A program made the translations under genes and the position numbers. From positions 5,890,001-5,954,000 of the forward strand of contig OZ176056.1 of NCBI GenBank assembly GCA_964247055.1: DNA of 64,000 nucleotides. Reading direction: 5' to 3'. How positions within the stretch are numbered: position 1 is the stretch's first letter; each line of letters opens with the position of its first letter. Source of the stretch: Paragordius varius. Lineage: Eukaryota; Animalia; Nematomorpha. The notes beneath the pieces are model-generated. The model did no database searches, was not told where the DNA came from, and was given only the letters and a program-made list of their open reading frames with translations. This document shows, piece by piece, positions 1,551-46,692 of this stretch.

Positions 1551-1613
1551 CAGCCATAGTATTTGATTTTCCACTTTCTTTAGCTTCCATCCTAGATCCA
1601 TTATTTGCTACTT
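1551..1613 (-). pseudogene. Stalk micro-exon copy with mutated donor, (E)VANNGSRMEAKESGKSNTMA
   Basis: Acceptor aatatgcAG, 63-nt open phase 1-1 frame homologous to other copies; donor reads GGATTT instead of GTATTT. Confidence 0.6.
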
Positions 1614-2642
1614 CTGCATATTATAAAATACATACTATATAATTGCTATATCTAAGTTAATATATATTGCTAAGTTGATCATAAATGTAGTTATTATAAT
1701 TTAGAGACAACCCACTATATCTCTTAATCGGTAAATATATAATCTCAAAATAATAATTTTTAGCAATCGGCTATTTTTAAATAATTTGATATAATTTTTT
1801 ACAACATGTAAGTAAAGTGGTGAACATCAGATGGTTAAATAATTCACATTTTTTAATTTAATAATTTGGCTAATTTTGTTGAAAAAGCTTTCATATAATA
1901 TATAAAATAAAGTGTAATATCCATCAGATTGAAATAATTAAAAATTAAATTTTATTTTTTGAATATAATCGAACTTTCATCAAAATTATTTAAAGAATTT
2001 AAAAATTATTTTTCAAATTTGGCCTCATCGGAGTTTAATAAGCAAACTTTACAATTGGGGGTTTATAATTATCAATCCATTTAAAGAGAATCTTATGTTA
2101 TTTGTTTTATAAGCGGTGACTATTAAGTTCATGTCATCTAAGTTTACTGTAAAATAATTTTTTGAATTTGGGCACCACTGCCCTTATTTTTGTGTAATGT
2201 TACATTTCAGAATAAGACCATATGATAATATAAATAAAAAATGTTACTCAAAATTATATTTAACCATTGATATAAGAAATATAACTTTTAGCTATTATAC
2301 GAAAAAATATATACCAATTATAGTATTATTAGCAGAAACATTGTTCAAGTTTTCTTCGTCTTTAAATATTATATAGAATAAAGTATTTAATATTTTACGA
2401 TTGTTACTCAAAATTATATTTAACAATTGATATAAGAAATATCTTTTAGCTATTATATGAAAAAAAATCCAATTATATTAATATTAATAGCAGGAACATT
2501 GTTTTCGTCTTTAAATATTATTTAGAGTAAAGTATTTAATAGTTTACATTGTTATATTAATACTAAAACATCATTAATAAAATGCAAGGTCTAATATTTA
2601 TAAGAAATTGCAATAAGGGTTGTGCAATTATATAGCCTCACA

Positions 2643-3240
2643 CAGTGGCGGAACTATAAATTGTGGGCCCCCCAATCTTTAAATACTGGCCAACCATTCC
2701 CCAAAAAAAATCGTTTGAAGTTATCTTTTCACCTGGCGCCTCACTTAGATTCCTAAACATATATTTAAACCTATCCTACTATGAAGACTAAATTCCTAAT
2801 TCATAAATGGGACAGCTTGTTAAGTGAAGCTTTCTTTAATTCGCTATATTCGTTGATATAAACACATTGTCAACATATGCGTAGAATACGGGCCCATCTA
2901 GGAATAGCAGCGGGGAAACTGCTTAAATATAGATTAATTGCTAAAAGATATTTTTTCGGAATTCGGATAAATAAATTTTGACATTTGTTTAGTCAGAATA
3001 AATTATTTTTATGATAATATGGTTTTTTGATATTATAATAACAGGGCTTCGAACCGGTTCTAAAAAAGTAGAATTAGAACCGGACTTTAATTTCAAAATG
3101 AATCGCTTCCTTAAACAGCAATAGGTTCCAATACGACTTGATAAATATGTATTAATTAATGTATTGATTAAATGGAACATTAATGTGCGGACAGCCAAGT
3201 TTAAATTTTGAGAATGGCCCTCTTAAATTGCCGACCATTG
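2643..3240 (+). mobile_element. Truncated copy (left end) of hAT-type element; others at 7569-8450, 20018-20610, 30074-30980, 37141-37690, 40894-41490
   Basis: Same left TIR, same left flank GCCTCACA and colinear internal motifs. Confidence 0.8.
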
Positions 3241-4232
3241 TTTTGTTAATCCTTATCAAAATTACGAAATCGGAAATATTGTTTTAAAGAAGCAATTCTA
3301 TTTATTTGCGTTAAAGCTATAGAAATGGTTAGGGAACCTTATGCGGACGATGGGCCGCGTTTTTAACAGCCCCTTAAAGCACTACCTCTTTAAATCAAAA
3401 AATATCTTTTTAAATATTACTTTTGCCATTATGTAATATAAAATCTACCAATTGGAGTGTTACGGTCAGGCTGTCGACTCGATTCCCTCTTTTTTTCTTT
3501 TGCCACTAAAGTTATTATGAAAAATAAAGTCTTAAATTTATATAATTATATTATAAATTATATCATTATAAGATTTCAATTTTGCTGTAGGATATCTGAT
3601 AAAAAATTGAAACTTTTTGCATTATGTAAATTATCTCAGTAAGCCTAGTGATATATTCAGGCTACCACTGGATTCACTGTTATTTTCTTTTGACACGAAA
3701 GATATTATTTTAAATGAATAAATTTATACAATTATAATTATAAAATATATCAATATGAGGTTTCAATTTTCCTGATAACCCTTGCCTCTAAGTATGCAAT
3801 TAAGCTATTACGCATCATTCAGATAAATAGGCTGTTAAATATTCTTGCATTATTAAAACCGAATTCGGATGTTAAAATTGAAGAAGAAAATAATTAAAGA
3901 CATATCATAATAAGTAGTTACAACAAAACCAATTTGTTTAATAATCTTTTTATGTTAAAATTAATATAAAATAGCCTACTAAAATTTTTTCGATAGGGTG
4001 CCATACCGCTAATGATAACATTATTGCAATCAATAATTATTACTAAACTTAGAATGTGCTTTTTAAAATACTAACAAAATGTAGTGCCTCACCATATATC
4101 AAATCATAAATAGTAAAAATTCTATGAGCTTTCAGACACTATAACTATTGATGATTTTAGTTACAATCCTTTTTTTTCAAAGAAAATTTGTATCAAAGAT
4201 GTTGGCAAAAAATTAATTGAAAAAATAAATAC

Positions 4233-4295
4233 CAGAGATATTGCTAGGTTTTACACTCTCTCTAGATTTCATATCAGAACCAGCATTTGTTTCTT
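4233..4295 (-). CDS. Phase 1-1 micro-exon, (E)ETNAGSDMKSRESVKPSNIS
   Basis: atctttAG|AAGAAACA...ATCTCTG|GTATTT; 63 nt, no stop, N-x-S sequon. Confidence 0.72.
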
Positions 4296-5504
4296 CTAAA
4301 GATTTTAAAATACATAATAATAATTATTATTCAATCAAATTAAATGCTAAATCGGTCATAAATGTATCATAATTTTCATTCAACTCAATAATTCGAAAAT
4401 TTTTCATAAACAGGTTAGTTACACATTTAACCTAACACTTTACAGTTGGGATTTATTATAAAACGTTAAATATTCAGTCAAAGATATCAATATATAGAGT
4501 CTTATATTTATTTGTTTTATAAGCGACTTTTACGGTCATGTCATCTAAGTTATTGTAAAATTATTTTTTTGGATTTGGGTATTGCCCTTATTGCTGATAT
4601 TACATCATATTTTTCTAAAATTGCTTATATATTAATTATGCTAAAAGAAAAATACGATTTTTTGATCTGTTATTATCTGATAATATCATAATAATTTAAT
4701 ATCTCAAGTTTTATCATTTTATTTTTAATTATGGTTATTTTTCATTTTTTGCCTAATTTTGATTTTCTATCAATATTTGAAAAACTGTCGTTTATATAAA
4801 AATTTTCTGGCAAAAAATTCGCTGGTTAGAACTTTATGAAAAAAATAGAGATAAAAATTGACCTTCTTTTTTACACACAGTGAAATAGTTGTTAACTAAT
4901 TTATATCTATAAATATTTTTAAAGATTAATATGCCGTAAATTGGCTTTTCGATTAGCAATCACAAATTGGAAATAACTTTCTTTAATCTTGGGGCCCCCT
5001 ATAACAATTTTCTTACATATTTTTACGAGATTGTATATCATCATTTTGTGTTTAAAAATTAAAAATTCGCATATAAAAGATTAAATTTGAGCCATGTCAA
5101 AAATTAAATTATTTAGGCATGGGAATCATGTATTAAATATTACATTAAAATTATTTTTATTCAAAAAAAAAACGATTAATATATCTATAATCCAAACTTC
5201 TCAAAACTTAATATAAAACAAATAGCCTACTAAAACATTTTACGCTAATGATACCTATGAATTTTTACATAAATATTGTGCCATCAAAACTCAAATGTGT
5301 ATTTTGGCGAAAAATATAGTAGAATGTGTTTTTGAATTCAATATATATATTAAATAATTTTAATGGCTTAACATATCTCAAATTATAAATTTTAAAAATT
5401 GTATGATCTCTAAAACACTGTAATTATGTTGATTTTAGTTGCAATCCTTTTTTAAGATAATTTGTGAGAAACAATCAAGAAAAATAATTAGAATAACTAT
5501 ATAC

Positions 5505-5558
5505 CAGAGATATTCTTTAGTTTTACGTTTTCTTCCATTCTAGATCCATTTGTTACTT
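5505..5558 (-). CDS. Phase 1-1 micro-exon, (E)VTNGSRMEENVKLKNIS
   Basis: aaatgcAG|AAGTAACA...ATCTCTG|GTATAT; 54 nt, 9 nt shorter than the 63-nt type, frame preserved. Confidence 0.72.
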
Positions 5559-6377
5559 CTGCATTTTATAATACATAATATATAACTAATATATCTAAGT
5601 TAAATATTGCGAAATCGGTCATAAATGTAGTTTTTATAATTTTCATACAACCCACTAGATATCTCAATCGGAAAATATAGAATAACTCAAAATGATTTTT
5701 AGTAGTCGGCTATTTTTGACGAGTAAGTAAAGTGTGTGAACATCAGATGTTTAAATAATTAACATTTTTAAATTTAATAATTTGGCTACTTTTGAAAAAG
5801 CTTTCATATAGTATATAAAATAAAGTGTAATAATCCATCAGATTGAAATAATTAAATTAAATTTAATTTTTTGAATATAATCGAACTTTCATCAAAATTA
5901 TTTAAAGAATTTAAAAATTATTTTTCAAATTTGGCCTCATCGGAGTTTAAAAAGCAAACTTAACAATTGGGGGTTTATAATTATCAATCCATTTAAAGAG
6001 AATCTTATGTTATTTGTTTTCTAAGCGGTGACTTTTAAGTTCATGTCATCTAAGTTTACTGTAAAATAATTTTTTGAATTTGGGCACCACTGCCCTTATT
6101 TTGGTGTTATGTTACATTTCAGAATAAGGCCATATGATAATATAAATAAAAAATTAATTAGATAATGTTACTCAAAATTATATTTAACCATTAATATAAG
6201 AAATATAACTTTTAGCTATTATACGAAAAAAAATATACCAATTGTATTAGTATTATTGTTAGCAGGAACATTGCCCATGTTTTCTTCGGAATCTTCAAAT
6301 GATATTTAGAGTAAAGTATTTAATATTTTACACTGTTATATGAATAAAACATCATTAGTAAAATGCAAGGTGTAATA

Positions 6378-7506
6378 TACCATTTTTCATGCAAAAACAT
6401 CATTTTTTCAACCAAATGCAACATTTTTTCAACCAAACGCAACATTTTTTCAACCAAACGCAACATTTTTTCAAGCAAACGCAACATTTTTTCAAGCAAA
6501 GACATCATTTTTTCAAGCAAACGCAACATTTTTTCAAGCAAACGCAACATTTTTTCAAGCAAACGCAACATTTTTTCAAGCAAACGCAACATTTTTTCAA
6601 GCAAACGCAACATTTTTTCAACCAAAGACAACAGTTTTTCAAGCAAAAACAACAATTTTTTAAAAATTAAAAACCATTTTTTTTATTTTAATACATATTA
6701 AATTTAAAGTTAATGGAAATTAAATTTAGCGTAGAATTATGATTTTTATTATTTTATAATAAATATGTGATGGTATGATTGATTTTCAAACAAAATTTTG
6801 CCCATAATTGCATTATTTATATTATTTTATTCTTTTACAACTTTAGTTTAACCTTATCAGTCCATACATTTTGCACTTCAAAATTGTCCTTGAAAATTAA
6901 AAGTTGGTCCTAGAACACTTCAATTTGGTCCTTCAATATTTTAATTTTGATTCTAACTTTTATTAATCAAGCAATATTTTATTCATCTATCCTATCATTA
7001 ACCTATTTTCTTTATTTCCTAAACTTTTAAGGGAATACCATTTCTTTCATAAGAACCGTATATCAATATTATTTTTTATAAAAAATTTAACATTATTAAA
7101 CATCTAGGATTTGTGGGTTATTAATCGTAATATTTAGTTTAAAACATCAATAAGTTAATAATATTGATTTAAAGATGTTTGAAAATCAATCATACCATCA
7201 CATATTTATGATAAAATAATAAAAATCATAATTCTACGCTAAAATTAATTTCCATTAACTTTAAATTTAATATGTCTTAAAATAAAAAAAATGGTTTTTT
7301 ATTTTAAAAAAATTGTTGTTTTTGCTTGAAAAAATGTTGTCTATGGTTGAAAAAATGTTGCGTTTGCTTGAAAAAATGTTGCGTTTGCTTGAAAAAATGA
7401 TGACTTTGCTTGAAAAAATGTTGCGTTTGCTTGAAAGAATGTTGCGTTTGTTTGAAAAAATGTTGCATTTGGTTGAAAAAATGATGTTTTTGCATGAAAA
7501 ATGGTA
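6378..7506. mobile_element. Non-autonomous TIR element (Tc1/mariner-like, TA TSD) with ~400-bp TIRs containing a 21-bp minisatellite
   Basis: TA|TACCATTTTTCATGC...GCATGAAAAATGGTA|TA; empty site ggtgtaaTAtttatctg at 40826-40841. Confidence 0.85.
6385..6660 (+). repeat. 21-bp minisatellite (CATTTTTTCAAGCAAACGCAA)n; also at 7315-7495, 21455-21645, 22380-22645
   Basis: Contiguous units without spacers; produces the heptad ORFs MLRLLEK / TQHFFKQ. Confidence 0.95.
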
Positions 7507-8453
7507 TATTTATCTGAATATATTGCAAAAAGGGTTGTGCAGTTAAAATGTGCCCTTATAGCCTCACACAGTGGCGGAACTATAAATTGTGGGCCCCCCC
7601 GCAAGCTTTAAATACTGGCCAACCTTTGCCCCCCAAAAAATCGTATGAAGTTATCTTTTGACCTGGCGCCTCACTTAGATTCCTAAACATATATTTAAAT
7701 CCTACTATGAAGACTAATTTCCTAATTCATAAATGGGACAGCTTGTTAAGTGAAGCTTTCTTTAATTCGCTATATTCGTTGATATAAACACATTGTCAAC
7801 ATATGTGTAGAATACGGGTCTATCTAGGAATAGCAGCGGGGAAACCTTAAATATAAATTAATTGCTAAATATTATTTTTTAGAATTCGTATAAATAAATT
7901 TTGACATTTGTTTAGTCAGAATAAATTATTTTTTTGATAATATGGTTTTTTGATATTATAAAAACAGGCCTTCGAACCGGTCTAAAAAAGTGGAATTAGA
8001 ACCGGGCTTTAATTTCAAAATAAATCGCTTCCTAAAACAGCAACAGGTTCCAATACAACTTGATAAATATGAAATAAGATTGATTAAATGGAACATTAAT
8101 GTGCGGACCGCCAAGTTTTTAAATTTTAAAAATGGCCCATTAAAATTGCTGACCACTGTTTAAGTGTGTGATGAAAGTTTATCGAAAATTTGTTAACTAA
8201 AGATAAATTTCAAAATAACATGAATCAAAGGTTAAAAACATTAGAAAAATAATGCACATTTGTATACCAGACATATGTTAGCCAATTGACTTAATAATAA
8301 AATATGTGAAATAACAATCATTCTGTTAAAATTTAATGAATGTCCTTCAGGATTGCAATACAAAACATTTTTTACAAAATTAAAGTTATTTCTCATACAA
8401 TGTTGTAAAATGAATTGACCCACATTAATGTGGTTGGCCTGCATTAATTGCAT

Positions 8454-11400
8454 ATTCCATCCAACGCGTTTTAGGGCGCCCTTTCCCCTCTTGCCTTCAC
8501 AATATAATCATCAATCTGTTTACCAATGTAATTATTATCTCTTCTTTTAACATGTCCGAACCATCTTAAACGATGTACCATAAAACTTTTGCGTTATTGG
8601 TTTGATTTCCGTACTTCCTCTTATGTAGACATTCTTCACCTTGTCATTCCTCGTTACACCGCACATCAATCTAAGCATTCTCATTTCAGTAACCTCCAAG
8701 TTCTTTTCTGATTTCTTTATTGCCCATGTCTGTGAGTTGTACATCATTTTTGGCTGTACAACAGCACTGTAAATCTGACCCTTTACTTTTAGGTCAATAT
8801 TTTTGTCACACAAAACATATGAGATCTTTTTATAATTTGCCCAACTATTTCGAATTCTTAAATTAATATCAAGTGTTAAAGAACCATCTGCTGCTAAAAT
8901 CGCTCCTAAATATTTGCATTCCTCCTGTTTAATACCCACCCTTCTTCTAATTCTGTTTCTCGTTTTTTCCCGCCAAAATTTATCAGTTCTGTTTTCTTTT
9001 TATTAACTTTTAATCCGCATCGTCGTAACAAATCAATCCATTTACCCACCAATTCTTTCAATTCATGCAACTCGTCGGACAGCCTTATTAGGTCGTCTGC
9101 ATAAAGTAAATACAGCCACCATGTTGCCCCACTTCTTTTGAAATTTGGTCTATGCATATTATAAATAGTAACGGGCTGATTGCAGACACCTGATAGACCC
9201 CTTCGTTTATTTTAATAGGACCTGATACTCCCTGGTGTGTTATTTTGGTTTGGGAATCGTACATGCATTTTAAAATCTTTTTGTAACTTTCAGGGACGTT
9301 TTTCCGTCTTAAGCTCCACCATATTGTGCTTTGTGGTATTCTGTCATAAGCCTTTTCAATATCAATACAAATACCATGCAACTCCTTTTTCATTTCTATA
9401 TGCTTCTCGATTAGCCTTCTTACTGCGATCGGATCAATGGTGGACTTTCCTGAAAAAAAACCAAATTGATTACCCTCTATACTAACCATTTTTCTCATTC
9501 TTTTCTATTGTACTTTCTCAAATAACTTCATTGTATGCGACATCTCTAATTATTACAATCATTAATATCTCCTTTACCCTTGAAAATGGGAACAGTGAAA
9601 CTATCCTTCCATTCGGTTGGTATCATGCCTGTAGTAACTACATTATTAAAAATATCCGTCAAAAATTCAATACCTTTCTCTGACATTATTTTCCAACAGT
9701 TTATGTTATTATCGTCCGGACCTGCAGCCTTATTTATTGACATCTCTTTCAAACCAGCCTGGACTTCTTCTTTTGTTATACTTTCAATATGCGCAGATAT
9801 ATAATCTGGTGTTTCATGAAAATTTGTTTCACTGACGCCCAATTCAAGCTCCTGGAAGTATTCTTTCCACCTTTTCAATATTTTCGATTCCTCAACGAGT
9901 AATTTGCCGTTTTTATCTTTAGCTGTCCCGTAAGGGGGCAAGTCTAGCTTTCTTCTGTGTCTTTGTCGAGCAATTTTAAAAACTTTGTTTAGATCTTGCT
10001 TACTGTTTACCTCTTTATATAATGATGCAGTCTTTTCTTTTTTGACCAATCTTACAAGCCTTTTAAGTTCCTTATTAATCCTTTTACATTTTTCCTTGTC
10101 TCCTGCTTGGTGGGTAAACCTCCACATTTCAAAAGCTTTATTTCAGCCATGCCTCTCTATAAACCTGATTTCTGCCACCTTTCATTCCGCACACCTTAAC
10201 TCCCGCCTTCTTATTTTTTTTGGCAATTGAGACCAAACATTTTCTGGATCACTGTACCTGTCTAGTATGCCTACCGTTTCTACAAATCTCTCTTTACTGT
10301 TTCTTAGGAATTCCCATTTAATTACCTTCGGCGCTATAAGCTTAGGCTTTTCGGCATTTATTGGTATATCTGTCATATATTCACATAATTAAATTATGTT
10401 GTGTACTAATTTGCAGGTAGGTTGGACTTTGCAGTCCAAAACAAACTTTAAAGACTTTCGTGGCAATAGAATATAATCAATTTGTAACTTCTTATTTCCA
10501 CTTTCGTAGGTAATTAAGTGGCTATCCCTTTTAGTGTATTTGCCATAGCAATGTTATAGGATTGGGCAAATTTTAATAAACTAGCCCCTTCTTCAATTAT
10601 GACCCTGTAACCTTTTCCGCCGTGCCAAGGCTCAAACCTCTCCTATTTTGTCCCACGTGCCCATTGAAATCACCACAAAATATGATTTCTTTGTCTTTCG
10701 TTAATGAAGTCATTTCTGCGTCTAACAAATCATAAAATTTATCTTTCTCCGGTTTAGCTAACCCTATCTGGGGGGCCTAAACGCTAAAGATAGTAAAAAC
10801 CCTCTTATTTAACAATAGGTCGACACTTATAATTCTACTGTCAGCACGTCTAACATCAATTACTTGATTGGCAAATCATGAACACACTATTATGGCGACC
10901 CTACTGTAACCATCCGTAGAACCTGAATAAAACATTTTATAATTATCCTCTAATGTCTTAGTACCATTTCCACGGTATCTGGTCTCCTGAATGCCCAAAA
11001 AATTTACTTTTTTTACCCTCATAATTTAACTAAATCATATTACTTACTTTTTAACGAACCAACATTTATACTGGCAAAACACACTCTACAACATTCCTTA
11101 TCCCTATTGACCCCTACCTCCGTGCAATGGCTGGATCTGGCCTGCACGCCTTACAAAAAACACCCATAAAAAACAAAAATACAATATAGAAGAATAATAA
11201 TAGATAAAAATAAAAACTAAAATATATAGGAACTAATATGTAAATGCAACCAAAAAGAATCAAAATATTTGAACCAAAAAATAAAAAAAATACATAAATA
11301 AATTATATCAATAAATAAAAATGAAATTAAATACGCATCTTTACAACTGAGGAATTAGAATTATGATTTGGAATATGTAATAATAAAACAATAAATAGAA

Positions 11401-11465
11401 AAATTATAAGAAAAATATTATAAAGGTAATTACGCGCCATTTTTGAATGAATGTCTCAGTAATAT
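8454..11465 (-). mobile_element. Degenerate RTE-clade non-LTR retrotransposon (APE + RT), 3' end deleted
   Basis: Frameshifted fragments with YADD, NQFGF..GKSTIDP, YLGAIL, KGRPKTRW, IDYIL (ORFs 8547-10376 minus). Confidence 0.93.
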
Positions 11466-13165
11466 ATAAAATTATCCATCAGATCGATATAATTAAAAAT
11501 ATTATATATAATTTAGTATTTTAAAGATAATTAGACTTTAATCAAAATTTAATTATTTGGAGTGAAAAAAGTCATTTATCAAATTTCTATGCATTGGAGT
11601 CTAAATATATATTTGCAAAATTTATTAACAGGTTAGATAAACATTTGGCCTGACAACCAACTTTACAATTGGCGGTAATTAAAATTAATTAGTCATTGTT
11701 ACTCTAAATTATAAAAAACCATTGATATAAAAATTATAACTTTATGCTATTATATAAAAAAAATATACCAATTGGATTAGTGTCATTGTTAGCAGGCGCA
11801 ACCTTAGATGGACTCGCAATGTTTCCTTTGGAATCTTAAATATTAGTTAGAGTGAAATAATTAATAATTTACATCGTTATATTAATAGAACATTATTAAT
11901 AAAATGCGAGGTCTATTGAAGAATATCTTGCAAAAAAGGGTTTTGCAGTCAAAAATTATACCCTTATAGCCTCATAATCAAACGCTATTTTCTTGTTTTA
12001 TAATTCACAAAAGCGTTTTTATAATTGCGAAAATATTCTTGATTGGGTAAATTATAAATTAATCGGAATATCAATCAAACTTTTTCAAATGTTCGGGAAA
12101 ACGTTTTGATTGACTGGGAAAACGTTTAGTTCGATTAGAAAATTTCGATTCATATGATTATTAAACAAAATATATGAATAACAGTATGATTACACATTTA
12201 TTTTATGAACTAGATTTTATCACTATATTTGGGAGTCGACTAATCTAAACTTTGTTTTAGATATCAAAACAGGAGATTAATTACTTTACGGTGTAATTTA
12301 TTTTGGGTTTAGAGCATTTTTAACATTATGCACCTACTAAATTAATATACAATGGTGTTAGTTCTTGCCAAAATTCCGAAATATCAAATTGTTTTAGAGA
12401 AGCAATATTATTTTAATGTTAAAGCTAAAAAATGGTAAGGAAACCGATGGATAATGGGCCGTGTTTTTAACACCCTCTGTAATGTACTACCTTAATTGTG
12501 ATACCATGTATTAAAATAATATCCACATAAACGTGAAAATAAATTTAGGAAATAACTTTTATATAAAATATTTTTACTATAAAATATATTAATGAACCAC
12601 TAATAAAAGAACTTTTGCCATTTGTAATATATAATCTACCAGTTGTAGTGTTATGGGCTTCAAACTCACCATTGGTTTCATTCTTTTTTTGTTTTGACCC
12701 TATAGTTATTATTTTAATTAAATTTTAATATATAATTATATTCATAAAAGATTCAATTTTTCTGCAGGATACCCTCTGCTAAGTATGCAATTACAATTAC
12801 GCATGATCGAGAGAAATTGGCCGTTAATATTTTTGTAAAGTTTGTATACTTTTTTAACAAAACACCGAATTCAGCATGATAAAATTTAATAAGAAAATAA
12901 TTAAATACATAAAATTTTTTAAAAAACTATTATGTATAAATAACCTTTTTATGATAAAATTATGCGCCATCAATCAAATAATATGTATTAAGGCGAATAA
13001 TTCTTTAAAAAAACTCTCAAGTATTAGTTAACTTAGAATGTGTTTTTAAGTTCAATATATACTAACAAAATATATCTGCACTATACTTATTGATTTTAGT
13101 TAGAATACTTTTTTTCAAAACAAAATTTGTTGAAAATCTTGGAAATCAATTAAAAATATAAATAC

Positions 13166-13225
13166 CAGATATATTATTTGGTTTTCCACTTTCTTTAGAT
13201 TCCATATCAGCTCTATCGATTGTTT
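13166..13225 (-). CDS. Phase 1-1 micro-exon, (E/K)TIDRADMESKESGKPNNIS
   Basis: tttaacAG|AAACAATC...ATATCTG|GTATTT; 60 nt, open. Confidence 0.72.
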
Positions 13226-13772
13226 CTGTTAAAGATTTTAAAATACATAATATATAATTAATATTAAACTATATTGCTAAATCGGCCATCAATGTAGTTT
13301 TTAAATATTTCATACAATTCACTGGATCTCTCAATAAATTATTGAAAAACTCAAAATGGTTTTCTGCTATTTTTGAAGGATAATTTCGTTTAAGCTTTTA
13401 CAGCATCTAACTTAAATGAATTAGTTTGTATAAATATCCATTTACGATAAAATTAATATAAAATAGACTACTAAATTTTTTCAATATAGTACCACACCGC
13501 TAATGATTCATACGAAGTTTGACATTATTGCGCCATAAATAATCAAATGTGTATTCTGGCGAATAACTCCTTAAAAAACTTTAAAATATTAGTTAACTTA
13601 GAATCTGTTGAATTCAATGTATATTAAATAAATTTAGTGCCTCAACATATCTCAAATCATAATAGTGACCTCTAGATCACTGTAATTACGAATGATTTTA
13701 GTTGCAATCCGTTTTTTGAAGAAATTTTGTTAAAAGATCTTGGCAAAAAAATTAAATAAAAAAACTATATAC

Positions 13773-32100: not shown

Positions 32101-32159
32101 TTTTCAAAGAAAATTTGTATCAAGGATCTTGGCAAAAAATTAATTGAAAAAATAAATAC

Positions 32160-33976: not shown

Positions 33977-34922
33977 TTATTTTTGTGGATTTTGTTTTTT
34001 GAAAAAAATGGCATTTTACGGGGGCAGCGGGTAAAAAGAGGAATCAAAAAAGTGAGTCGACTATGTTCGGCGCAAGCGAAAATAAGTAAACAAAAATCAT
34101 ATTTGAAATTGAATGATCCAACACGTTCTCCAGAAAATTGTCTCAAAGACACGATTTTTGTGGACTTTTGTTTTGAAAAAAAACCGTTTTTCACACGGGA
34201 TGGGCCCGAACTGGGAGCCTATTTTAAAAAAAGACCGAAGCTATTTTCGGGGCATTCATTAATGATTATATTTTTTCGATGTTTGGATTTGAATGGGTCT
34301 ACCAGTTTTCCGGTACCAGTTCACAAAGCCAGCATTTTCCATTTTTATAAATATATATATTACCATAAATATGTTTTATTATCCATATATTTTTTAACAT
34401 CCAATACATATAATAGATACTCCTTACTCAGCAGCTATCATCAAAGAAACGCCTGACTAAAATTTTTACCTTTTAACAGGGAATACAAAAAATCCATATT
34501 AAATTTTTACAGTCTCATACCATGGGCAAAAAAATACAATTAAATAATTATTTTTGTGGACTTTGTTTTTTGAAAAAAATGGCATTTTACGATGGGAGCG
34601 GGTAAAAAGAGGGCCTAAAAAAAGTCGACTATGTTCGGCGCAATCGAAAATAAGTTAACAAAAATATCTGAAATTATATGATCCAACACGTTCTCCAGAA
34701 AATTGTCTCAAAGTCACAATTTTTGTGGACTTTTGTTTTCAAAAAAACCTGTTTTTCACACGGGGTGGGCCCGAACTGGGGGCCTATTTCAAAAAAAGGA
34801 CGAAGCTATTGTCGGGGTATTTATTAATGATTATCTTTTTTCGATGTTTGGATTTGAATGGGTCTACCAGTTTTCCGGTACCAGATCACAAAGCCAGCAT
34901 TTTCCATTTTTATAAATATATA
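33977..34922 (+). repeat. Two tandem copies of a ~380-bp GC-richer element (33977-34360, 34548-34922); repeated at 44305-45258
   Basis: Shared atggcattttacg...gggcccgaactggg...ccggtaccag...gcattttccattttt. Confidence 0.8.
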
Positions 34923-35187
34923 GATTAACACTTTATCCCGCTTATGTAAGATACCGAATTAAACCAAAAGAAAATAACTCTATTTTATTATGTTAATTTT
35001 ACTGTGTTATAATATTACGATATTAATAATGCCTTTAGCTAGTAAAAAAATTAATATCTGAACAATATTAAATAGTCTGTTTTAGATAATATTAATGTTA
35101 TAAATATACAAATCAAACTCCAAATTAATTAGAATAATAAAATTGGTGTTAATGCAAAAATGGAAATATGTTTGAAATTTAATAATA

Positions 35188-35303
35188 TTAGTTATTAATT
35201 GACAGATAGTATATACATACTGCTATCTGGCAATTATTAATGAAAAATACTGTTAGAAACAAAATTATTGAAATGAACATACCATTAGCATGATTATGAT
35301 GAT
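35188..35303 (-). CDS. His micro-exon (D)HHNHAN (35283-35303) with in-frame hydrophobic read-through GMFISIILFLTVFFINNCQIAVCIYYLSINN*
   Basis: tctttttAG|ATCATCATAATCATGCTAATG|GTATGT; duplicate of 45525-45640. Confidence 0.55.
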
Positions 35304-36313
35304 CTAAAAAGACAATAAAATATATAATAATAACAATCTATACAAATGACGTTTAAATATGAGCAATTTATGTTAATAGTTGAGAAATATTAATTTCCAA
35401 AAAATTGGTTTTGTTCCATAAATGCAATTTTACTAATTTTTGTATCGTTGAAAAAAAATTTATCAATCAGATTTGTATGAATTCGTGAGTGAAAATAAAC
35501 ACAAAAAACTGATTTTAAGCATTCATATATTTTTTAGTTTCCAGTTTAAGTTTCATCAAAGTAGCGCTTACTTTGATTCAAATTATTTTAATAGCCCAGA
35601 CTATATTTAAATTGATATTTCAAAACAACTACTGAATGAAATTGCCCTAATTTAAATTTATGCTTCAATATGAATTATAAAAATAGGCCGAATTTTTTTA
35701 AATTTTGTTTCGAAAAATCTATATTAAACTATTTTGACACCATTTTTATTTTACCAAATTGCAAAATATCGTATTTATTTGATTTTTAAGCTAATTTAAG
35801 TAATTTTTTGATTTATAACACAAACATTGTCAGAAAAAATAGCTTTTTACATTATTGTTATATTTAGCTAATAAACACATGTCATGTTTTATTTAGAAAT
35901 CCTACATGAGTGGAGTTATCAAGTATATAATTTATGATAAATAAGTTAAAGTAATGGAATATCAACCACAATCCGTACAAATCCCTGTAACATGTTTCAA
36001 CACAAATTAATATTTTTACTGGGATGTGTACGAATATTTGGTTGATTTTCCACTACTTTCCTATATTGTATAAATTTTATACTTTGATCTCCCACTCATG
36101 TAAGATCCCAAAATAAAACAGAAATTTTTTATACGCTCGCTGAATATCCTTAATTTTCACTCTTTGCCCGATTTCTATTTCTCAATATTTCATTTAGGCC
36201 GTAAACAAATAATAGTTTTTACGGCAAATGAATAAGCTGTCATAATCTATCTCATAAAAAAATTTTTTGTTAACAATTACAAAGATATAATATAAAAATA
36301 AATGTCATTATAC

Positions 36314-36355
36314 CCATTTCACTTCCTGATGGTGGAGTTGTTACTTTGGATGGCA
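36314..36355 (-). CDS. Phase 1-1 micro-exon, (V)PSKVTTPPSGSEM
   Basis: ataataacAG|TGCCATCC...GAAATGG|GTATAA; 42 nt, P/S/T-rich, GC island in AT-rich intron. Confidence 0.7.
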
Positions 36356-38674
36356 CTGTTATTATAAAAATGTATTTTTGTAAATTTATAAAATATATAA
36401 ACTTAGCATATTATTTAAGAATTTGTTATTAATTAAATACCATATTACAATTCTTAAATTCATAATATCTTAGAACTGAAAATGGAGAATGTTGTGTGTA
36501 TAGTTTTTAAAAATTTAATTTAGAAAGAGAAGTATTAAGACCATAAAATAAAAATATATATAAAATTTAGAATCTATATCTATGCATTTTAAAGGAACCT
36601 ATCTTGATTTATTAAAATATAAAATAAATATATCAGTAATAAAATCAAATTTGCAAATGCTGTTGTAAAAAAGTATATGACGTTACACCATTTTTATATT
36701 TGTTAATATTATATTTTTATAAGTATTTTTCTTTTTACTGATCCACAAAATTATTTCGTAATAGGCATATGAAAGAGGATTGAGCTTTAATTTGATGGAT
36801 ATTTTGTAATGTTAAATTTTTATGTTAACATTTGAAATATTGTTGTTACGTATTTAGATGCGGAATTATGTGGATTTTTATACTTAATAATTAAATAAAT
36901 AGTAAAATGGGTATTTTAAAATTAATATTTTAATTCATAATTAAATTTAATAATTAATATTTTTTAACATGATAAATACTTGTATTAACCGAAATTGGTA
37001 AAATTATTTTATATAGTTGTTATTACTAATTATAAAACACTGGTTAATATATATATGTGACTATTTAAGTAGATTTTAGATTGTTTTTGTTTTTATGTTT
37101 TTCATTGTCAATTTTAAATATTCAAACATTTTCATCAGGTACCCAAAAAAATCGTATGAAGTTATCTTTTGACCTGGCGCCTCACTTAGATTCCTAAACA
37201 TATATTTAAACCTATCCTACTATGAAGATTAAATTCCTAATTCATAAGACAGCTTGTTAAGTGAAGCTTTCTCTATTTTTGGCATGCTCACATATTCGTT
37301 GATATAAACACATTGTCAATATATGCGTAGAATACGGGCCCATCTAGGAATAGCAGCGGGGAAACTGCTTAAATATAAATTAATTGCTAAAAGTTATTTT
37401 TACGGAATTCGGATAAATAAATTTTGACATTTGTTTAGTCAGAATAAATTATTTTTTATGATAATATGGTTTTTTGATATTATAATAACGGGGCTTCGAA
37501 CCGGTCCTAAAAAAGCAGAATTAGAACCGTGCTTTAATTTCAAAATGAATCGCTTCCTAAAACAGCAACAGGTTCCAATACGACTTCATATATGAAATAA
37601 TGTATTGATTAAATGGAACATTAATATGCGGACCGCCAAGTTTTTAAATTTTGAGAATGGCCCTCTTAAATTGCCGACCATTGTTTTGTTACTCCTTATC
37701 AAAATTACGAAATCAGAAATATTGTTTTAAAGAAGAAATATTATTATTTGATTGCGTTAAAGCTATAGAAATGGTTAGGGAACCTTATGCTGATGGGCCG
37801 CGTAGCCCCTTAAAGCACTACCTCTTTAAATCAAAAAATATCTTTTTAAATAATTACTTTTGCCATTATGTAATATAAAATCTACCAATTGAAGTGTTAC
37901 GGTCAGGCTGTCGACTCGATTCACTCTTTTTTTCTTTTGCCACTAAAGTTATTATGAAAAATAAAGTCTTAAATTTATATAATTATATTATTAATTATAT
38001 CATTATAAGATTTCAATTTTTCTGTAGGATATCTGATAAAAAATTGAAATTTTTGCATTATGTAAATTATCTCAGTAGGCCTAGTGATATGTTCAGGCTA
38101 CCACTGGATTCACTGTATTTTCTTTTGACACGAAAGATATTATTTTAAATGAATAAATTTATATAATTATACAAAATATATCAATATGAGATTTCAATTT
38201 TCCTGTAGGATAACCCTTGCCTCTAAGTATGCAATTAAGCTATTACGCATCATTCAGATAAATAGGTTGTTAAATATTCTTGCATTTTTTGAACAAAACA
38301 CCGAATTCGGATGTTAAAATTGAAGAAGAAAATAATTATAGACATATCATAATAAGTAGTTACAACAAAACCAATTTGTTTAATAATCTTTTTATGTTAA
38401 AATTAATATAAAATAGCCTACTAAAATTTTTTCGATATAGTGCCATACCGCTAATGATAACATTATTGCAATCAATAATTATTACTAAACTTAGAATGTG
38501 CTTTTAAATATACTAACAAAATGTAGTGCCTCACCATATATCAAATCATAAATAGTAAAAATTCTATGAGCTTTAAGACACTATAACTATTGATGATTTT
38601 AGTTACAATCCTTTTTTTTCAAAGAAAATTTGTATCAAAGATCTTGGCAAAAAATTAATTGAAAAAATAAATAC

Positions 38675-38734
38675 CAGAGATATTGCCAGGTTTTACACTC
38701 TCTCTAGATTTCATATCTGATCCAGCATTTGTTT
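38675..38734 (-). CDS. Micro-exon (E)TNAGSDMKSRESVKPGNIS using second AG of a NAGNAG site
   Basis: Canonical TAG mutated to TTG; downstream AAG gives in-frame 60-nt exon; donor GTATTT intact. Confidence 0.55.
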
Positions 38735-39961
38735 CTTCAAAAGATTTTAAAATACATAATAATAATTATTTTTCAATCAAATTAAATGCTAAATCGGTCA
38801 TAAATGTATCATAATTTTCATTCAACTCACTAATTCTAAAATTTATCATAAACAGGTTAGTTACACATTTAACCTAACAATCAAACTTTACAGTTGGGAT
38901 TTATTATAAAACGTTAAATATCCAGTCAAAGATATCAATATATAGAGTCTTATATTTATTTGTTTTATAAGCGACTTTTACCGTCATGTCATCTAAGTTA
39001 TTGTAAAATTATTTTTTTGGATTTGGGTATTGCCCTTATTGCTGATATTACATCATATTTTTCTAAAATTGCTTATATATTAATTATGCTAAAAGAAAAA
39101 TACGATTTTTTGATCTAAGTTATTATCAGATAATATCATAATTATTTAATATCTCAAGTTTTATCATTTTATTTTTAATTATGGTTATTTTTCATTTTTT
39201 GCCTAATTTTGATTTTCTATCAATATTTGAAAACTTAGTCGTTTATATAAAAATTTTCTGGCAAAAAATTCGCTGGTTAGAACTTCATGAAAAAAAAATA
39301 GATATAAAAATTGACCTTCTTTTTTACACACAGTGAAATAGTTGTTAACTAATTTATATCTATAAATATTTTTAAAGATTATTTAATAATATGCCGTAAA
39401 TTGGCTTTTCGATTAGCAATCACAAATTGGGAATAACTTTCTTTAATCTTAGGGCCCCCTATAACAATTTTCTTACAGATTTTTACGAGATTGTATATCA
39501 TCATTTTGTGTTTAAAAATTAAAAATTCGCATATAAAAGATTAAATTTGAGCCATGTCAAAAATTAAATTATTTAGGCATGGGAATCATGTATTAAATAT
39601 TACATTAAAATTATTTTTATTCAAAAAAAACGATTAATATATCTATAATCCAAACTTCTCAAAACTTAATATAAAACAAATAGCCTACTAAAACATTTTA
39701 CGCTAATGATACCTATGAATTTTTACATAAATATTGTGCCATCAAAACTCAAATGTGTATTTTGGCGAAAAATATAGTAGAATGTGTTTTTGAATTCAAT
39801 ATATATATTAAATAATTTTAATAGCTTAACATATCTCAAATTATAAATTTTAAAAATTGTATGATCTCTAAAACACTGTAATTATGTTGATTTTAGTTGC
39901 AATCCTTTTTTAAGATAATTTGTGAGAAACAATCAAGAAAAATAATTAGATAACTATATAC

Positions 39962-40015
39962 CAGAGATATTCTTTGGTTTTACGTTTTCTTCCATTCTAG
40001 ATCCATTTGTTACTT
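39962..40015 (-). CDS. Phase 1-1 micro-exon, (E)VTNGSRMEENVKPKNIS
   Basis: aaatccAG...ATCTCTG|GTATAT; 54 nt, open. Confidence 0.72.
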
Positions 40016-42475
40016 CTGGATTTTATAATACATAATATATAACTAATATATCTAAGTTAAATATTGCGAAATCGGTCATAAATGTAGTTTTTATAATTTT
40101 CATACAACCCACTAGATATCTCAATCGGAAAATATAGAATAAATCAAAATGATTTTTAGTAGTCGGCTATTTTTGACGAGTAAGTAAAGTGTGTGAACAT
40201 CAGATGTTTAAATAATTAACATTTTTGAATTCAATAATTTGGCTACTTTTGAAAAAGCTTTCATATAGTATATAAAATAAAGTGTAATAATCCATCAGAT
40301 TGAAATAATTAAATTAAATTTAATTTTTTGAATATAATCGAACTTTCATCAAAATTATTTAAAGAATTTAAAAATTATTTTTCAAATTTGGCCTCATCGG
40401 AGTTTAATAAGCAAACTTAACAATTGGGGGTTTATAATTATCAATCCATTTAAAGAGAATCTTATGTTATTTGTTTTCTAAGCGGTGACTTTTAAGTTCA
40501 TGTCATCTAAGTTTACTGTAAAATAATTTTTTGAATTTGGGCACCACTGCCCTTATTTTGGTGTTATGTTACATTTCAGAATAAGACCATATGATAATAT
40601 AAATAAAAAATTAATTAGATAATGTTACTCAAAATTATATTTAACCATTAATATAAGAAATATAACTTTTAGCTATTATACGAAAAAAATATACCAATTG
40701 TATTAGTATTATTGTTAGCAGGAACATTGCCCATGTTTTCTTCGGAATCTTCAAATAATATTTAGAGAAAAGTATTTAATATTTTACACTGTTATATGAA
40801 TAAAACATCATTAGTAAAATGCAAGGTGTAATATTTATCTGAATATATTGCAAAAAGGGTTGTGCAGTTAAAATATGCCCTTATAGCCTCAGACAGTGGC
40901 GGAACTATAAATTGTGAGCCGCCCCGCAAGCTTTAAATACTGGCCAACCTTTGCCCCCCAAAAAATCGTATGAAGTTATCTTTTCACCTGGCGCCTCACT
41001 TAGATTCCTGAACATATATTTAAACCTATCCTACTATGAAGACTAATTTCCTAATTCATAAATGGGACAGCTTGTTAAGTGAAGCTTTCTTTAATTCGCT
41101 ATATTCGTTGATATAAACACATTGTCAACATATGTGTAGAATACGGGTATATCTAGGAATAGCAGCGGGGAAACTGCTTAAATATAAATTAATTGCTAAA
41201 TATTATTTTTTAGAATTCGTATAAATAAATTTTGACATTTGTTTAGTCAGAATAAATTTTTTTTGATAATATGGTTTTTTGATATTATAAAAACAGGCCT
41301 TCGAACCGGTCTAAAAAAGTGGAATTAGAACCGGGCTTTAATTTCAAAATAAATCGCTTCCTAAAACAGCAACAGGTTCCAATACGACTTCATAAATATG
41401 AAATAATGTATTGATTAAATGGAACATTAATGTGCGGACCGCCAAGTTTTTAATTTTTGAGAATGGCCCTCTTAAATTGCCGACCATTGTTTTGTTACTC
41501 CTTATCAAAATTACGAAATCAGAAATATTGTTTTAAAGAAGCAATATTATTTGATTGCGTTAAAGCTATAGAAATGGTTAGGGAACCTTATGCTGATGGG
41601 CCGCGTAGCCCCTTAAAGCACTACCTCTTTAAATCAAAAAATATCTTTTTAAATAATTACTTTTGCCATTATGTAATATAAAATCTACCAATTGAAGTGT
41701 TACGGTCAGGCTGTCGACTCGATTCACTCTTTTTTTCTTTTGCCACTAAAGTTATTATGAAAAATAAAGTCTTAAATTTATATAATTATATTATTAATTA
41801 TATCATTATAAGATTTCAATTTTTCTGTAGGATATCTGATAAAAAATTGAAATTTTTGCATTATGTAAATTATCTCAGTAAGCCTAGTGATATGCTCAGG
41901 CTACCACTGGATTCACTGTATTTTCTTTTGACACGAAAGATATTATTTTAAATGAATAAATTTATATAATTATACAAAATATATCAATATGAGATTTCAA
42001 TTTTCCTGTAGGATAACCCTTGCCTCTAAGTATGCAATTAAGCTATTACGCATGATTCAGATAAATAGGCTGTTAAATATTCTTGAATTTTTTGAACAAA
42101 ACACCGAATTCGGATGTTAAAATGAAGAAGAAAATAATTATAGACATATCATAATAAGTAGTTACAACAAAACCAATTTGTTTAATAATCTTTTTATGTT
42201 AAAATTAATATAAAATAGCCTACTAAAATTTTTTCGATATAGTGCCATACCGCTAATGATAACATTATTGCAATCAATAATTATTACTAAACTTAGAATG
42301 TGCTTTTAAATATACTAACAAAATGTAGTGCCTCACCATATATCAAATCATAAATAGTAAAAATTCTATGAGCTTTAAGACACTATAACTATTGATGATT
42401 TTAGTTACAATCCTTTTTTTCAAAGAAAATTTGTATCAAAGATCTTGGCAAAAAATTAATTGAAAAAATAAATAC

Positions 42476-42538
42476 CAGAGATATTGCTAGGTTTTACACT
42501 CTCTCTAGATTTCATATCAGATCCAGCATTTGTTTCTT
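42476..42538 (-). CDS. Phase 1-1 micro-exon, (E)ETNAGSDMKSRESVKPSNIS
   Basis: atctttAG...ATCTCTG|GTATTT; 63 nt, open. Confidence 0.72.
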
Positions 42539-45524
42539 CTAAAGATTCTAAAATACATAATAATAATTATTATTCAATCAAATTAAATGCTAAATAAATA
42601 GCTTAAAATCATATAAAAGGGGTTTTTATAAATTCGTTTTTCGCAACCACACTTAATAGTTAATATATTTTTATGAAACTATATTAAAATAATTTTTATT
42701 TATTAATACTAGCATCTTAAAGTAATGGAACATCACCCAATATCCGTATAAATCCCTGTAATGGGTTTGTTTTAACACATATCAATTTTTGCTGGGATTT
42801 GTACGAATTTTTGGTTTTTCAAGTAAATAATAAAAAAAATATTTTCAGTTTCAGTAAATATTTTTTCGAATAGAGTAATCCGCCATATTAACTGACATTT
42901 TATATGATTGCTATATATATAGAAAATATCTCCTGAAATGATAATCAATCATAATATCTCAACTTTTATTAATATTTTGTAAATTATCCTTAAATTTCAC
43001 CTTTTGCCCAATTTCGATTTTCTCTCAATATTTCAAAAACTAGGCCAACAAATTAGTTTTTAAATTATGGATAGAACATTTAAATTGGTTAAAAAAATAA
43101 AAATTGCGTATAATTAAGGATAATTAAAAAATATATTGATTTGGATTAAGCTGTTTTATTATTATTCAGAAATTACAATTTTTCCATAACTTAAAATCAT
43201 AGTTAGGTTTATGAATACACAGATAAATATCGGGTTTTTTTTATAACATATTTGATACACAAATTTTTTTATGGAACCATATTAATATTTTTAAAATATA
43301 GCTAACGGTATTAAAATATTATTAACACTTCGATTCAAATTGGAGTATCTAAATACACCAGACTATATATAAATTGAATTTTTTAAAAAACTACTGAAAG
43401 AAATGGTCCCAATTTAAATTTATGCTTCTATCCTAATAAAAATTATATAAATGGCCGAAATATTTAAATAAAATTTGGTTTTGAAAAAAAAGTTCCATAT
43501 CAAACTACTTCGACGCCATTTTATTTCTCTAACATTTTTGCAAAATATCGTGTTTATAAAGCTAAAGTGATAGTTAATTTTTCATTTAAATCACAACTAA
43601 CATTGATAGAAACAGAAAAAGTGGTTTATTTTGTATATATTTAAATTTAGCTAATGCACACATGTCATGTTGACTAAATTTTTACCTTTTAGGTTTTACC
43701 TAAAAATAAGTAAAAGCAAGTATTTTAAAATGAAATTTTTTATATATTTCGGTCCATATTTCAATTTATTCCATATTTTTTGTATTATTTATTTTAAACA
43801 GGCCTGGGGTATCCAACTACCCCAATTTGAATTGTGAAGGACTGAAATGGATTTGTTGTATCCAAGTGTTAATATATTACACCGTAAAATAATTATATAT
43901 AAACATAACCGAAAAATAAAGTATTTTTTCATTTTTTGTTCAATTGGTTTATTAGTCTCTAATAAATTACGTTTTATTTTAGAATTACATGAGTGGGAAA
44001 CAAATCTTTAATTTATACAAAATACGATTCTAAGTGGATTAGCAACTAAAAATCCATACAAATTCCAGCAAAACTATCAATTTGTGTTAAAACAAACCTT
44101 TTAAAGGGAGGAAGGATTTTTGATTGATAATACACTTGTACATCCTATTTTATTTAATAACTAGCGTAAATCAAGGGACAATAAAATGATCCACATATGT
44201 GGATTACTTCAAAACATTATTTAAATATGATTTTATAGGAATTTTAAAACGGTGCATTCATACTAATATATTGTTTACTTGGGGGAAAAATAGATTTAAA
44301 AAATTATTTTTGTGGATTTTGTTTTTTGAAAAAAATGGCATTTTACGGGGGCAGCGGGTAAAAAGAGGGCCTAACCCAAAAAAGTGAGTCGACTATGGTG
44401 GGCGCAATCGAAAATAAGTAAACAAAAATCATATTTGAAATTGAATGATCCAACACGTTCTCCAGAAAATTGTCTCAAAGACACGATTTTTGTGGACTTT
44501 TGTTTTGAAAAAAAAACCGTTTTTCACACAGGATGGGCCCGAACTGGGAGCCTATTTTAAAAAAAGACCGAAGCTATTGTCGGGGCATTCATTAATGATT
44601 ATATTTTTCGATGTTTGGATTTGAATGGGTCTACCAGTTTTCCGGTACCAGATCACAAAGCCAGCATTTTCCATTTTTATAAATATATGGATTACCATAA
44701 ATATGTTTTATTATCCATATATTTTTTAACATCCAATACATATAATAGATACTCCTTACTCAGCAGCTATCATCAAAGAAACGCCTGACTAAAATTTTTA
44801 CCTTTTAACAGGGAATACAAAAAATCCATATTAAATTTTTACAGTCTCATACCATGGGCAAAAAAATACAATTAAAAAATTATTTTTGTGGACTTTGTTT
44901 TTTGAAAAAAATGGCATTTTACGATGGGAGCGGGTAAAAAGAGGGCCTAAAAAAAGTCGACTATGTTCGGCGCAATCGAAAATAAGTTAACAAAAATATC
45001 TGAAATTATATGATCCAACACGTTCTCCAGAAAATTGTCTCAAAGTCACGATTTTTGTGGACTTTTGTTTTCAAAAAAAACCTGTTTTTCACACGGGGTG
45101 GGCCCGAACTGGGGGCCTATTTCAAAAAAAGGACGAAGCTATTGTCGGGGTATTTATTAATGATTATCTTTTTTCGATATTTGGATTTGAATGGGTCTAC
45201 CAGTTTTCCGGTACCAGATCACAAAGCCAGCATTTTCCATTTTTATAAATATATAGATTAACACTTTATCCCGCTTATGTAAGATACCGAATTAAACCAA
45301 AAGAAAATAACTCTATTTTATTATGTTAATTTTACTGTGTTATAATATTACGATATAAATAATGCCTTTAGCTAGTAAAAAAATATTCTAATATGTGAAC
45401 AATATTAAATAGTCTGTTTTAGATAATATTAATGTTATAAATATACAAATCAAACTCCAAATTAATTAGAATAATAAAATTGGTGTTAATGCAAAAATGG
45501 AAATATGTTTGAAATTTAATAATA

Positions 45525-45640
45525 TTAGTTATAAATTGACAGATAGCATATACATACTGCTATCTGGCAATTATTAATGAAAAATACTGTTAGAAACAAA
45601 ATTATTGAAATGAACATACCATTAGCATGATTATGATGAT
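45525..45640 (-). CDS. His micro-exon (D)HHNHAN (45620-45640) with in-frame hydrophobic read-through GMFISIILFLTVFFINNCQIAVCICYLSIYN*
   Basis: Strong acceptor tctttttAG, internal donor G|GTATGT after 21 nt, frame open 32 further codons to TAA. Confidence 0.55.
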
Positions 45641-46650
45641 CTAAAAAGACAATAAAATATATAATAATAACAATCTATACAAATGACGTTTAAATATGAG
45701 CAATTTATGTTAATAGTTGAGAAATATTAATTTCCAAAAAATTGGTTTTGTTCCATAAATGCAATTTTACTAATTTTTGTATCGTTGAAAAAAAATTTAT
45801 CTATCAGATTTGTATGAATTCGTGAGTGAAAATAAACACAAAAAACTGATTTTAAGCATTCATATATTTTTTAGTTTCCAGTTTAAGTTTCATCAAAGTA
45901 GCGCTTACTTTGATTCAAATTATTTTAATAGCCCAGACTATATTTAAATTGATATTTCAAAACAACTACTGAATGAAATTGCCCTAATTTAAATTTATGC
46001 TTCAATATGAATTATAAAAATAGGCCGAATTTTTTTAAATTTTGTTTTGAAAAATCTATATTAAACTATTTTGACACCATTTTTATTTTACCAAATTGCA
46101 AAATATCGTATTTATTTGATTTTTAAGCTAATTTAAGTAATTTTTTGATTTATAACACAAACATTGTCAGAAAAAATAGCTTTTTACATTATTGTTATAT
46201 TTAGCTAATAAACACATGTCATGTTTTATTTAGAAATCCTACATGAGTGGAGTTATCAAGTATATAATTTATGATAAATAAGTTAAAGTAATGGAATATC
46301 AACCACAATCCGTACAAATCCCTGTAACATGTTTCAACACAAATTAATATTTTTACTGGGATGTGTACGAATATTTGGTTGATTTTCCACTACTTTCCTA
46401 TATTGTATAAATTTTATACTTTGATCTCCCACTCATGTAAGATCCCAAAATAAAACAGAAATTTTTTATACGCTCGCTGAATATCCTTAATTTTCACTCT
46501 TTGCCCGATTTCTATTTCTCAATATTTCATTTGGGCCGTAAACAAATAATAGTTTTTACGGCAAATGAATAAGCTGTCATAATCTATCTCATAAAAAAAT
46601 TTTTTGTTAACAATTACAAAGATATAATATAAAAATAAATGTCATTATAC

Positions 46651-46692
46651 CCATTTCACTTCCTGATGGTGGAGTTGTTACTTTGGATAGCA
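46651..46692 (-). CDS. Phase 1-1 micro-exon, (V)LSKVTTPPSGSEM
   Basis: ataataacAG...GAAATGG|GTATAA; 42 nt. Confidence 0.7.

Follow-up and report, generated by a model that had tools for sequence, protein, structure and literature searches.

Whether a row of short, repeated segments bounded by splice-like dinucleotides consists of working exons, or only of duplicated DNA, is the question raised by a locus of the nematomorph Paragordius varius. The locus lies in a stretch of 64,000 nucleotides (nt) of contig OZ176056.1 (positions 5,890,001 to 5,954,000), which is referred to as the window. It comprises a candidate first exon near 47 kb and, downstream of it on the minus strand, 17 short segments between positions 46692 and 1551. 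Roughly an even chance is given to the reading that the locus is a genuine gene, that its product is a disordered and probably glycosylated stalk, and that it has grown as exon and intron were duplicated together in tandem. Such a gene would start at 47376 on the minus strand. Its exon 1 would code for an FN3-like domain preceded by a start that resembles a signal peptide, and would end in intron phase 1. Beyond it would extend at least 45 kb of transposon-filled introns, holding 13 homologous exons of 51-63 nt with phase 1 at both ends, and two PST and two His micro-exons would possibly form part of the same gene. Once transcribed, spliced and secreted, the stalk exons together would yield an intrinsically disordered, probably N-glycosylated spacer that distances the FN3 head from a C-terminal anchor. 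That anchor would lie outside the window, or else the protein would end at the copy at 1613-1551. Selection would keep the frame free of stops and frameshifts and would hardly constrain the residues, and a copy that loses a splice site could be skipped without breaking the frame.

The stalk copies were located by self-BLAST with a 300-nt query taken round the example peptide of a preliminary description of the locus, and were aligned with MAFFT. The query matches 13 copies, all on the minus strand, in the interval from 1.4 to 42.6 kb. The complete set of 17 segments consists of 12 homologous stalk copies of 54, 60 or 63 nt, one divergent copy of 51 nt, two PST segments of 42 nt and two His segments of 21 nt. 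In the order in which a minus-strand transcript would meet them, exon 1 and the segments are as follows.

47100 to 47376, minus strand: exon 1, with an ATG at 47376, a hydrophobic N-terminus, an FN3-like domain and the donor G/GTGATT, ending in phase 1.
46651 to 46692, minus strand: PST micro-exon candidate (a), 42 nt, bounded by AG and GTATAATG, with a guanine-plus-cytosine (GC) fraction of 0.43.
45620 to 45640, minus strand: His micro-exon candidate (a), 21 nt, between tctttttAG and GTATGT.
42476 to 42538, minus strand: stalk exon copy, 63 nt, AG and GT intact (ETNAGSDMKSRESVKPSNIS).
39962 to 40015, minus strand: stalk exon copy, 54 nt, AG and GT intact.
38675 to 38737, minus strand: stalk exon copy, 63 nt, homologous acceptor TG, with an in-frame AG 3 nt downstream.
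36314 to 36355, minus strand: PST micro-exon candidate (b), 42 nt, one base different from (a).
35283 to 35303, minus strand: His micro-exon candidate (b), 21 nt, identical to (a).
32160 to 32222, minus strand: stalk exon copy, 63 nt, acceptor AG shifted, the AG at +1 being out of frame and that at +3 in frame.
29064 to 29126, minus strand: stalk exon copy, 63 nt, AG and GT intact, source of the example peptide.
23920 to 23979, minus strand: stalk exon copy, 60 nt, AG and GT intact.
19082 to 19144, minus strand: stalk exon copy, 63 nt, AG and GT intact.
14456 to 14506, minus strand: divergent stalk exon copy, 51 nt, AG and GT intact.
13773 to 13832, minus strand: stalk exon copy, 60 nt, AG and GT intact, last exon base A.
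13166 to 13228, minus strand: stalk exon copy, 63 nt, homologous acceptor AA, with a CAG 3 nt downstream that gives a 60-nt in-frame exon.
5505 to 5558, minus strand: stalk exon copy, 54 nt, AG and GT intact.
4233 to 4295, minus strand: stalk exon copy, 63 nt, AG and GT intact.
1551 to 1613, minus strand: stalk exon copy, 63 nt, with GG in place of the GT donor.

All 17 segments announced in the preliminary description were recovered at the positions and lengths given there. Each is free of stops in phase 1, and every length difference between them is a multiple of 3, as had also been claimed. The AG/GT bounds proposed for them stand in most copies and fail in the copy with the GG donor and in three others (those starting at 13228, 32222 and 38737), which have lost the homologous acceptor AG. 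Each of these three has an in-frame AG at +3, because the exon starts with AAG, CAG or GAG. The 13 stalk copies align together with their flanks at 62-98% identity in a common AG/GT register with lengths of 3n, so that neighbouring copies are homologous and share one symmetric phase. A degenerate stalk copy considered at 12539-12615 was rejected, as no exon-like sequence is present there. A plus-strand reading of the segments was likewise rejected; the frame is open in that direction too, but the segments are then bounded by AC and CT.

The case for exons is carried by the way in which the copies have diverged. Insertions and deletions (indels) were counted in an alignment of the 12 close copies with flanks of -95 to +115 nt, which provides about 210 flank columns beside 63 exon columns. 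Wider flanks of 600 nt were unusable, owing to overlap between adjacent copies and to the mosaic make-up of the units. The exon columns hold four events (3, 3, 6 and 3 nt), all of them multiples of 3, whereas the flanks hold 33, nine of which are multiples of 3 and 24 are not (P = 0.0055; merging two adjacent 3-nt events into a single one raises it to 0.02). Frame-breaking indels are thus confined to the flanks, in agreement with the earlier claim. When a span of 63 columns is slid along the alignment, length is uniform modulo 3 only at columns 107-181, which correspond to the AG..GT segment with 5 columns upstream and 7 downstream.

Substitutions tell a similar story with regard to stop codons. 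Parsimony on the copy tree places 51 substitutions in the exon, none of which creates a stop, against 4.2 expected from the mutation spectrum of the flanks, under which 8.2% of changes are stop-creating. Simulation on the tree gives P = 0.024 for zero stops in all 12 copies (range of the stop test, P = 0.015-0.024), and the indel and stop tests combined give P of about 0.001-0.01. The segments are also islands of composition, rich in purines and GC and coinciding with the AG..GT bounds, with a GC fraction of 0.30-0.37 in every stalk copy and 0.43-0.45 in the PST segments, compared with 0.13-0.24 in the flanks. The stalk family therefore displays a frame-keeping signature of exons at the proposed bounds that is real but modest. 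The comparison of exons with flanks that had been proposed earlier comes out divided: the indel-length spectrum differs, but the ratio of nonsynonymous to synonymous substitution rates (dN/dS) is not significantly below 1.

A second line of evidence is provided by exon 1. Its N-terminus (MNLSSIIKFIIFMCSEY) is hydrophobic and, judged by its residues, would resemble a signal peptide. A phmmer search with exon 1 against 1.84 billion representatives returned FN3-repeat proteins only, all of them distant. The best match reached an expectation value (E) of 1.7e-17 over 15 repeats of a receptor-phosphatase-like protein. In the alignment with these matches, W18, G23 and Y27 fall on the conserved Trp, Gly and Tyr positions of FN3. 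An AlphaFold (AF2) model of exon 1 is a seven-strand sandwich with a predicted local distance difference test (pLDDT) value of 85, and its top Foldseek matches in the PDB are FN3 domains (template modelling score TMq 0.7-0.8). This fold check is partly circular, because the input alignment of the model consisted of FN3 segments. Exon 1 did not reach the gathering score of Pfam fn3 (PF00041) and matched no Pfam family even at E = 5, and a search against 5.8 billion clusters gave no match. With seven predicted strands and the core Trp and Tyr in place, exon 1 probably encodes an FN3-like domain.

The exon is open in the divergent alleles seen in the DNA sequencing runs that contain the locus (X1-X4). 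Within 47115-47328, all 12 listed differences from these runs change a residue (one of them turns Cys80 into Tyr) and leave the frame intact; the list holds the best-supported differences only and is a biased sample. Such residue-changing differences could be a sign of diversifying selection or, alternatively, of relaxed constraint. No conventional-looking minus-strand exon was found downstream of exon 1 among the open stretches of at least 45 codons that lie outside transposons in those 47 kb. Consequently, the next exons of exon 1, if it is part of a gene, would be small.

A considerable body of observations weighs against a working gene, and it is set out here together with the alternatives that draw on it. 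According to the first of these, the array is a non-coding tandem repeat. The open frame between AG and GT would then be an accident of one ancestor, copied 13 times and picked post hoc, and exon 1 would be an orphan or pseudo-exon. Candidates of this kind are easily found in AT-rich DNA: 22 segments that combine an AG, a length of 3n, an open phase-1 frame and a GTA occur in the 4.56 kb that separate exon 1 from the first stalk copy. The antisense frame is also open in 12 of 12 copies, which follows from the purine richness of the sense strand (60-72%). Moreover, descent from one common ancestor leaves few independent observations, and for a frame chosen post hoc a threefold penalty on the stop test is fair, giving P of about 0.07. 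An accident of this sort nevertheless appears quite unlikely. It has to contend with the combined frame-keeping probability given above, with a frame-neutral block that coincides with the exon and its splice signals, and with a compositional island present in every copy. In addition, the array shares its strand and phase with a nearby FN3-like exon, which requires further exons downstream.

A more serious alternative is suggested by the near-neutral evolution of the segments. Exon and flanks alike have accumulated 0.81 substitutions per column, and codon positions 1, 2 and 3 have changed 15, 18 and 18 times. Synonymous and nonsynonymous changes number 12 and 36 (the expected synonymous share is 18%), which corresponds to a dN/dS (omega) of about 0.65 and is not significantly below 1 (P = 0.19). 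The four canonical splice-site columns have changed four times, against about 3.2 expected neutrally, so that conservation at the splice dinucleotides does not exceed that of other columns, and the copy at 1613-1551 has lost its donor. In the young duplicates, divergence within the segments is as high as round them. This pattern, in which the frame is kept and the residues drift, fits a disordered spacer where frame alone matters. It also fits a set of pseudo-exons before decay.

The array could then be a relic, in which a real exon was duplicated with its intron, the gene or most of the array fell silent, and the copies are drifting pseudo-exons in a macrosatellite-like repeat whose frames are open because they are young and purine-rich. 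A 2.4-kb foldback element, inserted 91 nt upstream of the exon-1 ATG, abuts the putative promoter, and neither a transcript nor a protein is on record. A 70-residue spliced peptide (the end of exon 1, PST, His and two stalk exons) shares no words with any recorded protein, and look-ups of the exact product found no recorded protein of the locus in the collections searched. Against this reading, no stops are seen where about four are expected, and all indels are of 3n length, across lineages that differ by 20-30%. Every loss of an acceptor is backed by an in-frame AG, and exon 1 is open across divergent alleles. Decay of this kind is regarded as possible, although somewhat unlikely.

The link between head and stalk raises a further alternative, namely that the stalk exons are real but follow another first exon, or that exon 1 splices past the array, so that head and stalk do not belong to one protein. 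The reads examined are DNA and contain no readable junctions, and no read joins exon 1 to the array. That the four runs X1-X4 are DNA follows from their coverage of introns and from repeats at a depth of 1e5-5e6. The window stops before any 3' exon, and no 3' end of the gene is seen in it. The PST and His segments, proposed as connectors, are statistically unsupported. They are present as described earlier but carry no evolutionary signal and do no better than chance candidates: they are indistinguishable from the 20 other segments meeting the same rule in the 4.56 kb and only rank near the top of that list. Because both pairs sit in one 5.1-kb, 97.6%-identical duplication, each pair amounts to one observation. 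The PST and His micro-exons may belong to the gene. Separate transcripts are nonetheless considered very unlikely, as the phases agree (phase 1 at the end of exon 1, 1-1 for every segment) and a scan of the minus strand from 47 kb to the array showed no rival first exon.

A run search with one 63-nt stalk exon recovered the DNA runs already mentioned, and two further sets of sequences contain words of the stalk. For the stalk exon at 42476-42538, three of three sampled words occur in run X10, which carries a third species label, and two of three in X11. The latter consists of 24 Mb of contigs from the same sample as DNA run X2. Both X10 and X11 are below threshold on the exon-1 stretch. The word matches reflect either the multi-copy nature of the unit or expression.

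Regardless of whether the segments are spliced, the manner in which the array has grown can be read from self-comparison of the window, which confirms the tandem exon-plus-intron duplication proposed earlier. The duplications are nested; beside two long pairs there are many older pieces at 75-92% identity. One member of each long pair is given below.

41902 to 46973, no strand assigned: young segmental duplicate of 5.1 kb, 97.6% identical to 31592-36648, carrying PST, His and one stalk exon.
37142 to 40834, no strand assigned: segmental duplicate of 3.7 kb, 96% identical to 2700-6378, carrying two stalk exons.

The spacing from copy to copy ranges from about 0.6 to 7.6 kb, and the larger gaps include retrotransposon or foldback insertions. 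Within 13166-14506, three stalk copies are merely 540-620 nt apart, compared with 1.2-7.6 kb elsewhere; the repeat unit thus occurs both in a short form and in long forms filled with transposons. The depth of the stalk unit in the DNA runs is that of the array and not that of a transposon. As a mechanism, unequal crossing-over between repeat-rich introns readily suggests itself, and the same one has been described for symmetric exons of disordered proteins in general (PMC3632108).

If the gene is real, the product can be assembled conceptually. Joining exon 1 and the 17 segments with full inclusion gives an open frame of 395 codons with 21 N-glycosylation sequons, and in this model, deduced from the genomic letters, 909 of the 1186 coding nt lie in 3n segments of 21-63 nt. 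The stalk part would comprise 303 residues, rich in S, N, E, K, T and G, without F, W, C or Q, and with sequons throughout. Each stalk exon encodes 17-21 residues with one to three N-x-S/T sequons, and the split junction codon G/AA gives Glu. The stalk exons contain 16 sequons, against 7.7 in composition shuffles, or about twice the expectation. The hydrophilic, sequon-rich character attributed to the peptides is thereby confirmed, although the excess is weak evidence because the copies share ancestry. The production of many isoforms, put forward in the preliminary description, would be a further, hypothetical property of the array. With regard to the end of the protein, no convincing membrane-anchor or terminal exon was found in the last 1.5 kb of the window. 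Reading through the copy at 1613-1551 leads to a TAA after 5 codons, with an AATAAA about 30 nt later, and this copy may be either a dead or a terminal exon.

The surroundings of the array are those of AT-rich, animal-like DNA, with a GC content of 22-30% outside transposon bodies. The window contains two non-LTR (long terminal repeat) retrotransposon copies, an integrase remnant and several foldback elements, and Rfam and tRNA scans of it gave no match. The two retrotransposon copies are the following.

8453 to 12304, minus strand: degenerate non-LTR retrotransposon inside an array intron, with an RVT_1 domain.
24414 to 28257, minus strand: second non-LTR retrotransposon copy, about 90% alike to the first.

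Both copies show the RVT_1 domain and a weak endonuclease-like match, and they are independent insertions, because their positions within the repeat unit differ. Their open reading frame (ORF) has no homologue at E <= 1e-5 in the protein collection searched, and atlas searches with retrotransposon clusters pointed weakly to Cnidaria and Nematoda. The foldback element upstream of exon 1 spans 47467-49898; its arms are up to 98% complementary and carry 14-bp subterminal repeats (TCCTTATGCTTAAA). Loose ends at 47465 in runs X1 and X4 suggest an insertion polymorphism beside the putative promoter. Two other foldback elements, at 6374-7510 and 21444-22662, are located in array introns and have arms made of inverted arrays of a 21-bp unit (TTTTTCAAGCAAACGCAACAT). 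A dispersed repeat at 43276-45442, with a twin at about 33.0-35.1 kb, has an internal direct repeat of about 570 bp and a very high copy number: words from it reach a depth of 1e5-5e6 in the DNA runs, compared with about 1e3 for adjacent sequence. What is left of an integrase zinc-binding domain (PF17921, E 2e-8) can be recognised on the minus strand at 55412-55777, in a GC-richer block at 54-58 kb, and is probably a decayed LTR retrotransposon.

The design of the putative gene is already known, both from micro-exon genes (MEGs) and from the cassette spacers of titin PEVK or elastin. Titin PEVK and tropoelastin are examples of disordered regions assembled from symmetric cassette exons. The present stalk differs from them in its composition of S, N, E, K, T and G with sequons, which is neither PEVK-like nor elastin-like. 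It also differs in that a single exon family seems to make up the whole array, with one FN3 domain in front. Mucin-like and other glycosylated receptor stalks resemble it in having a hydrophilic, sequon-rich spacer after an N-terminal domain of Ig or FN3 type. However, the coding sequence of those stalks usually occupies a single large exon or a small number of them, O-glycosylation sites are often abundant in them, and no membrane anchor is seen here within the window. A survey of human proteins found that disordered proteins are often built from symmetric exons born of internal tandem duplication (PMC3632108). The locus shares with such regions the consecutive homologous exons in one symmetric phase, the low-complexity disordered sequence, the duplication of exon and intron as a unit and the possibility of skipping any exon in frame.

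The genome here has about 25% GC, unlike that of schistosomes. In schistosome MEGs, the coding region consists mostly of very small symmetric exons (PMC4350168), with exons of 3-81 bp and introns of up to 5 kb (PMC10526429). In the conceptual model, the locus would likewise have most of its coding length in small symmetric exons parted by kilobase introns, behind a 5' exon with a signal-peptide-like start, in a transposon-rich and duplication-prone setting. Its residues also evolve at a dN/dS near 1, and MEGs proper show values near or above 1 (PMC4350168). On the other hand, the locus has no homology to any recorded protein, exon 1 matching generic FN3 repeats only, so its sequence does not place it in any of the described MEG families. 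Its exons are tandem homologues of 51-63 nt and not strings of unrelated 6-36-nt exons, and a folded FN3-like domain would head the protein. It is rather unlikely that the locus represents a MEG-like family in an AT-rich, non-schistosome animal genome. In such a family, a polymorphic FN3 head on a stalk of variable copy number and combinatorial splicing would act as a recognition or host-interface molecule with diversified length and surface.

The biological meaning of the locus depends on splicing. Without splicing of the segments, it amounts to a tandem repeat in ordinary decay. If they are spliced, it would be a case in which unequal crossing-over of units of exon plus intron builds a disordered glycoprotein stalk and alters its length, while selection acts on the frame alone. 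Annotation based on ORFs or on homology would then miss whole genes of this type in the Paragordius varius genome.

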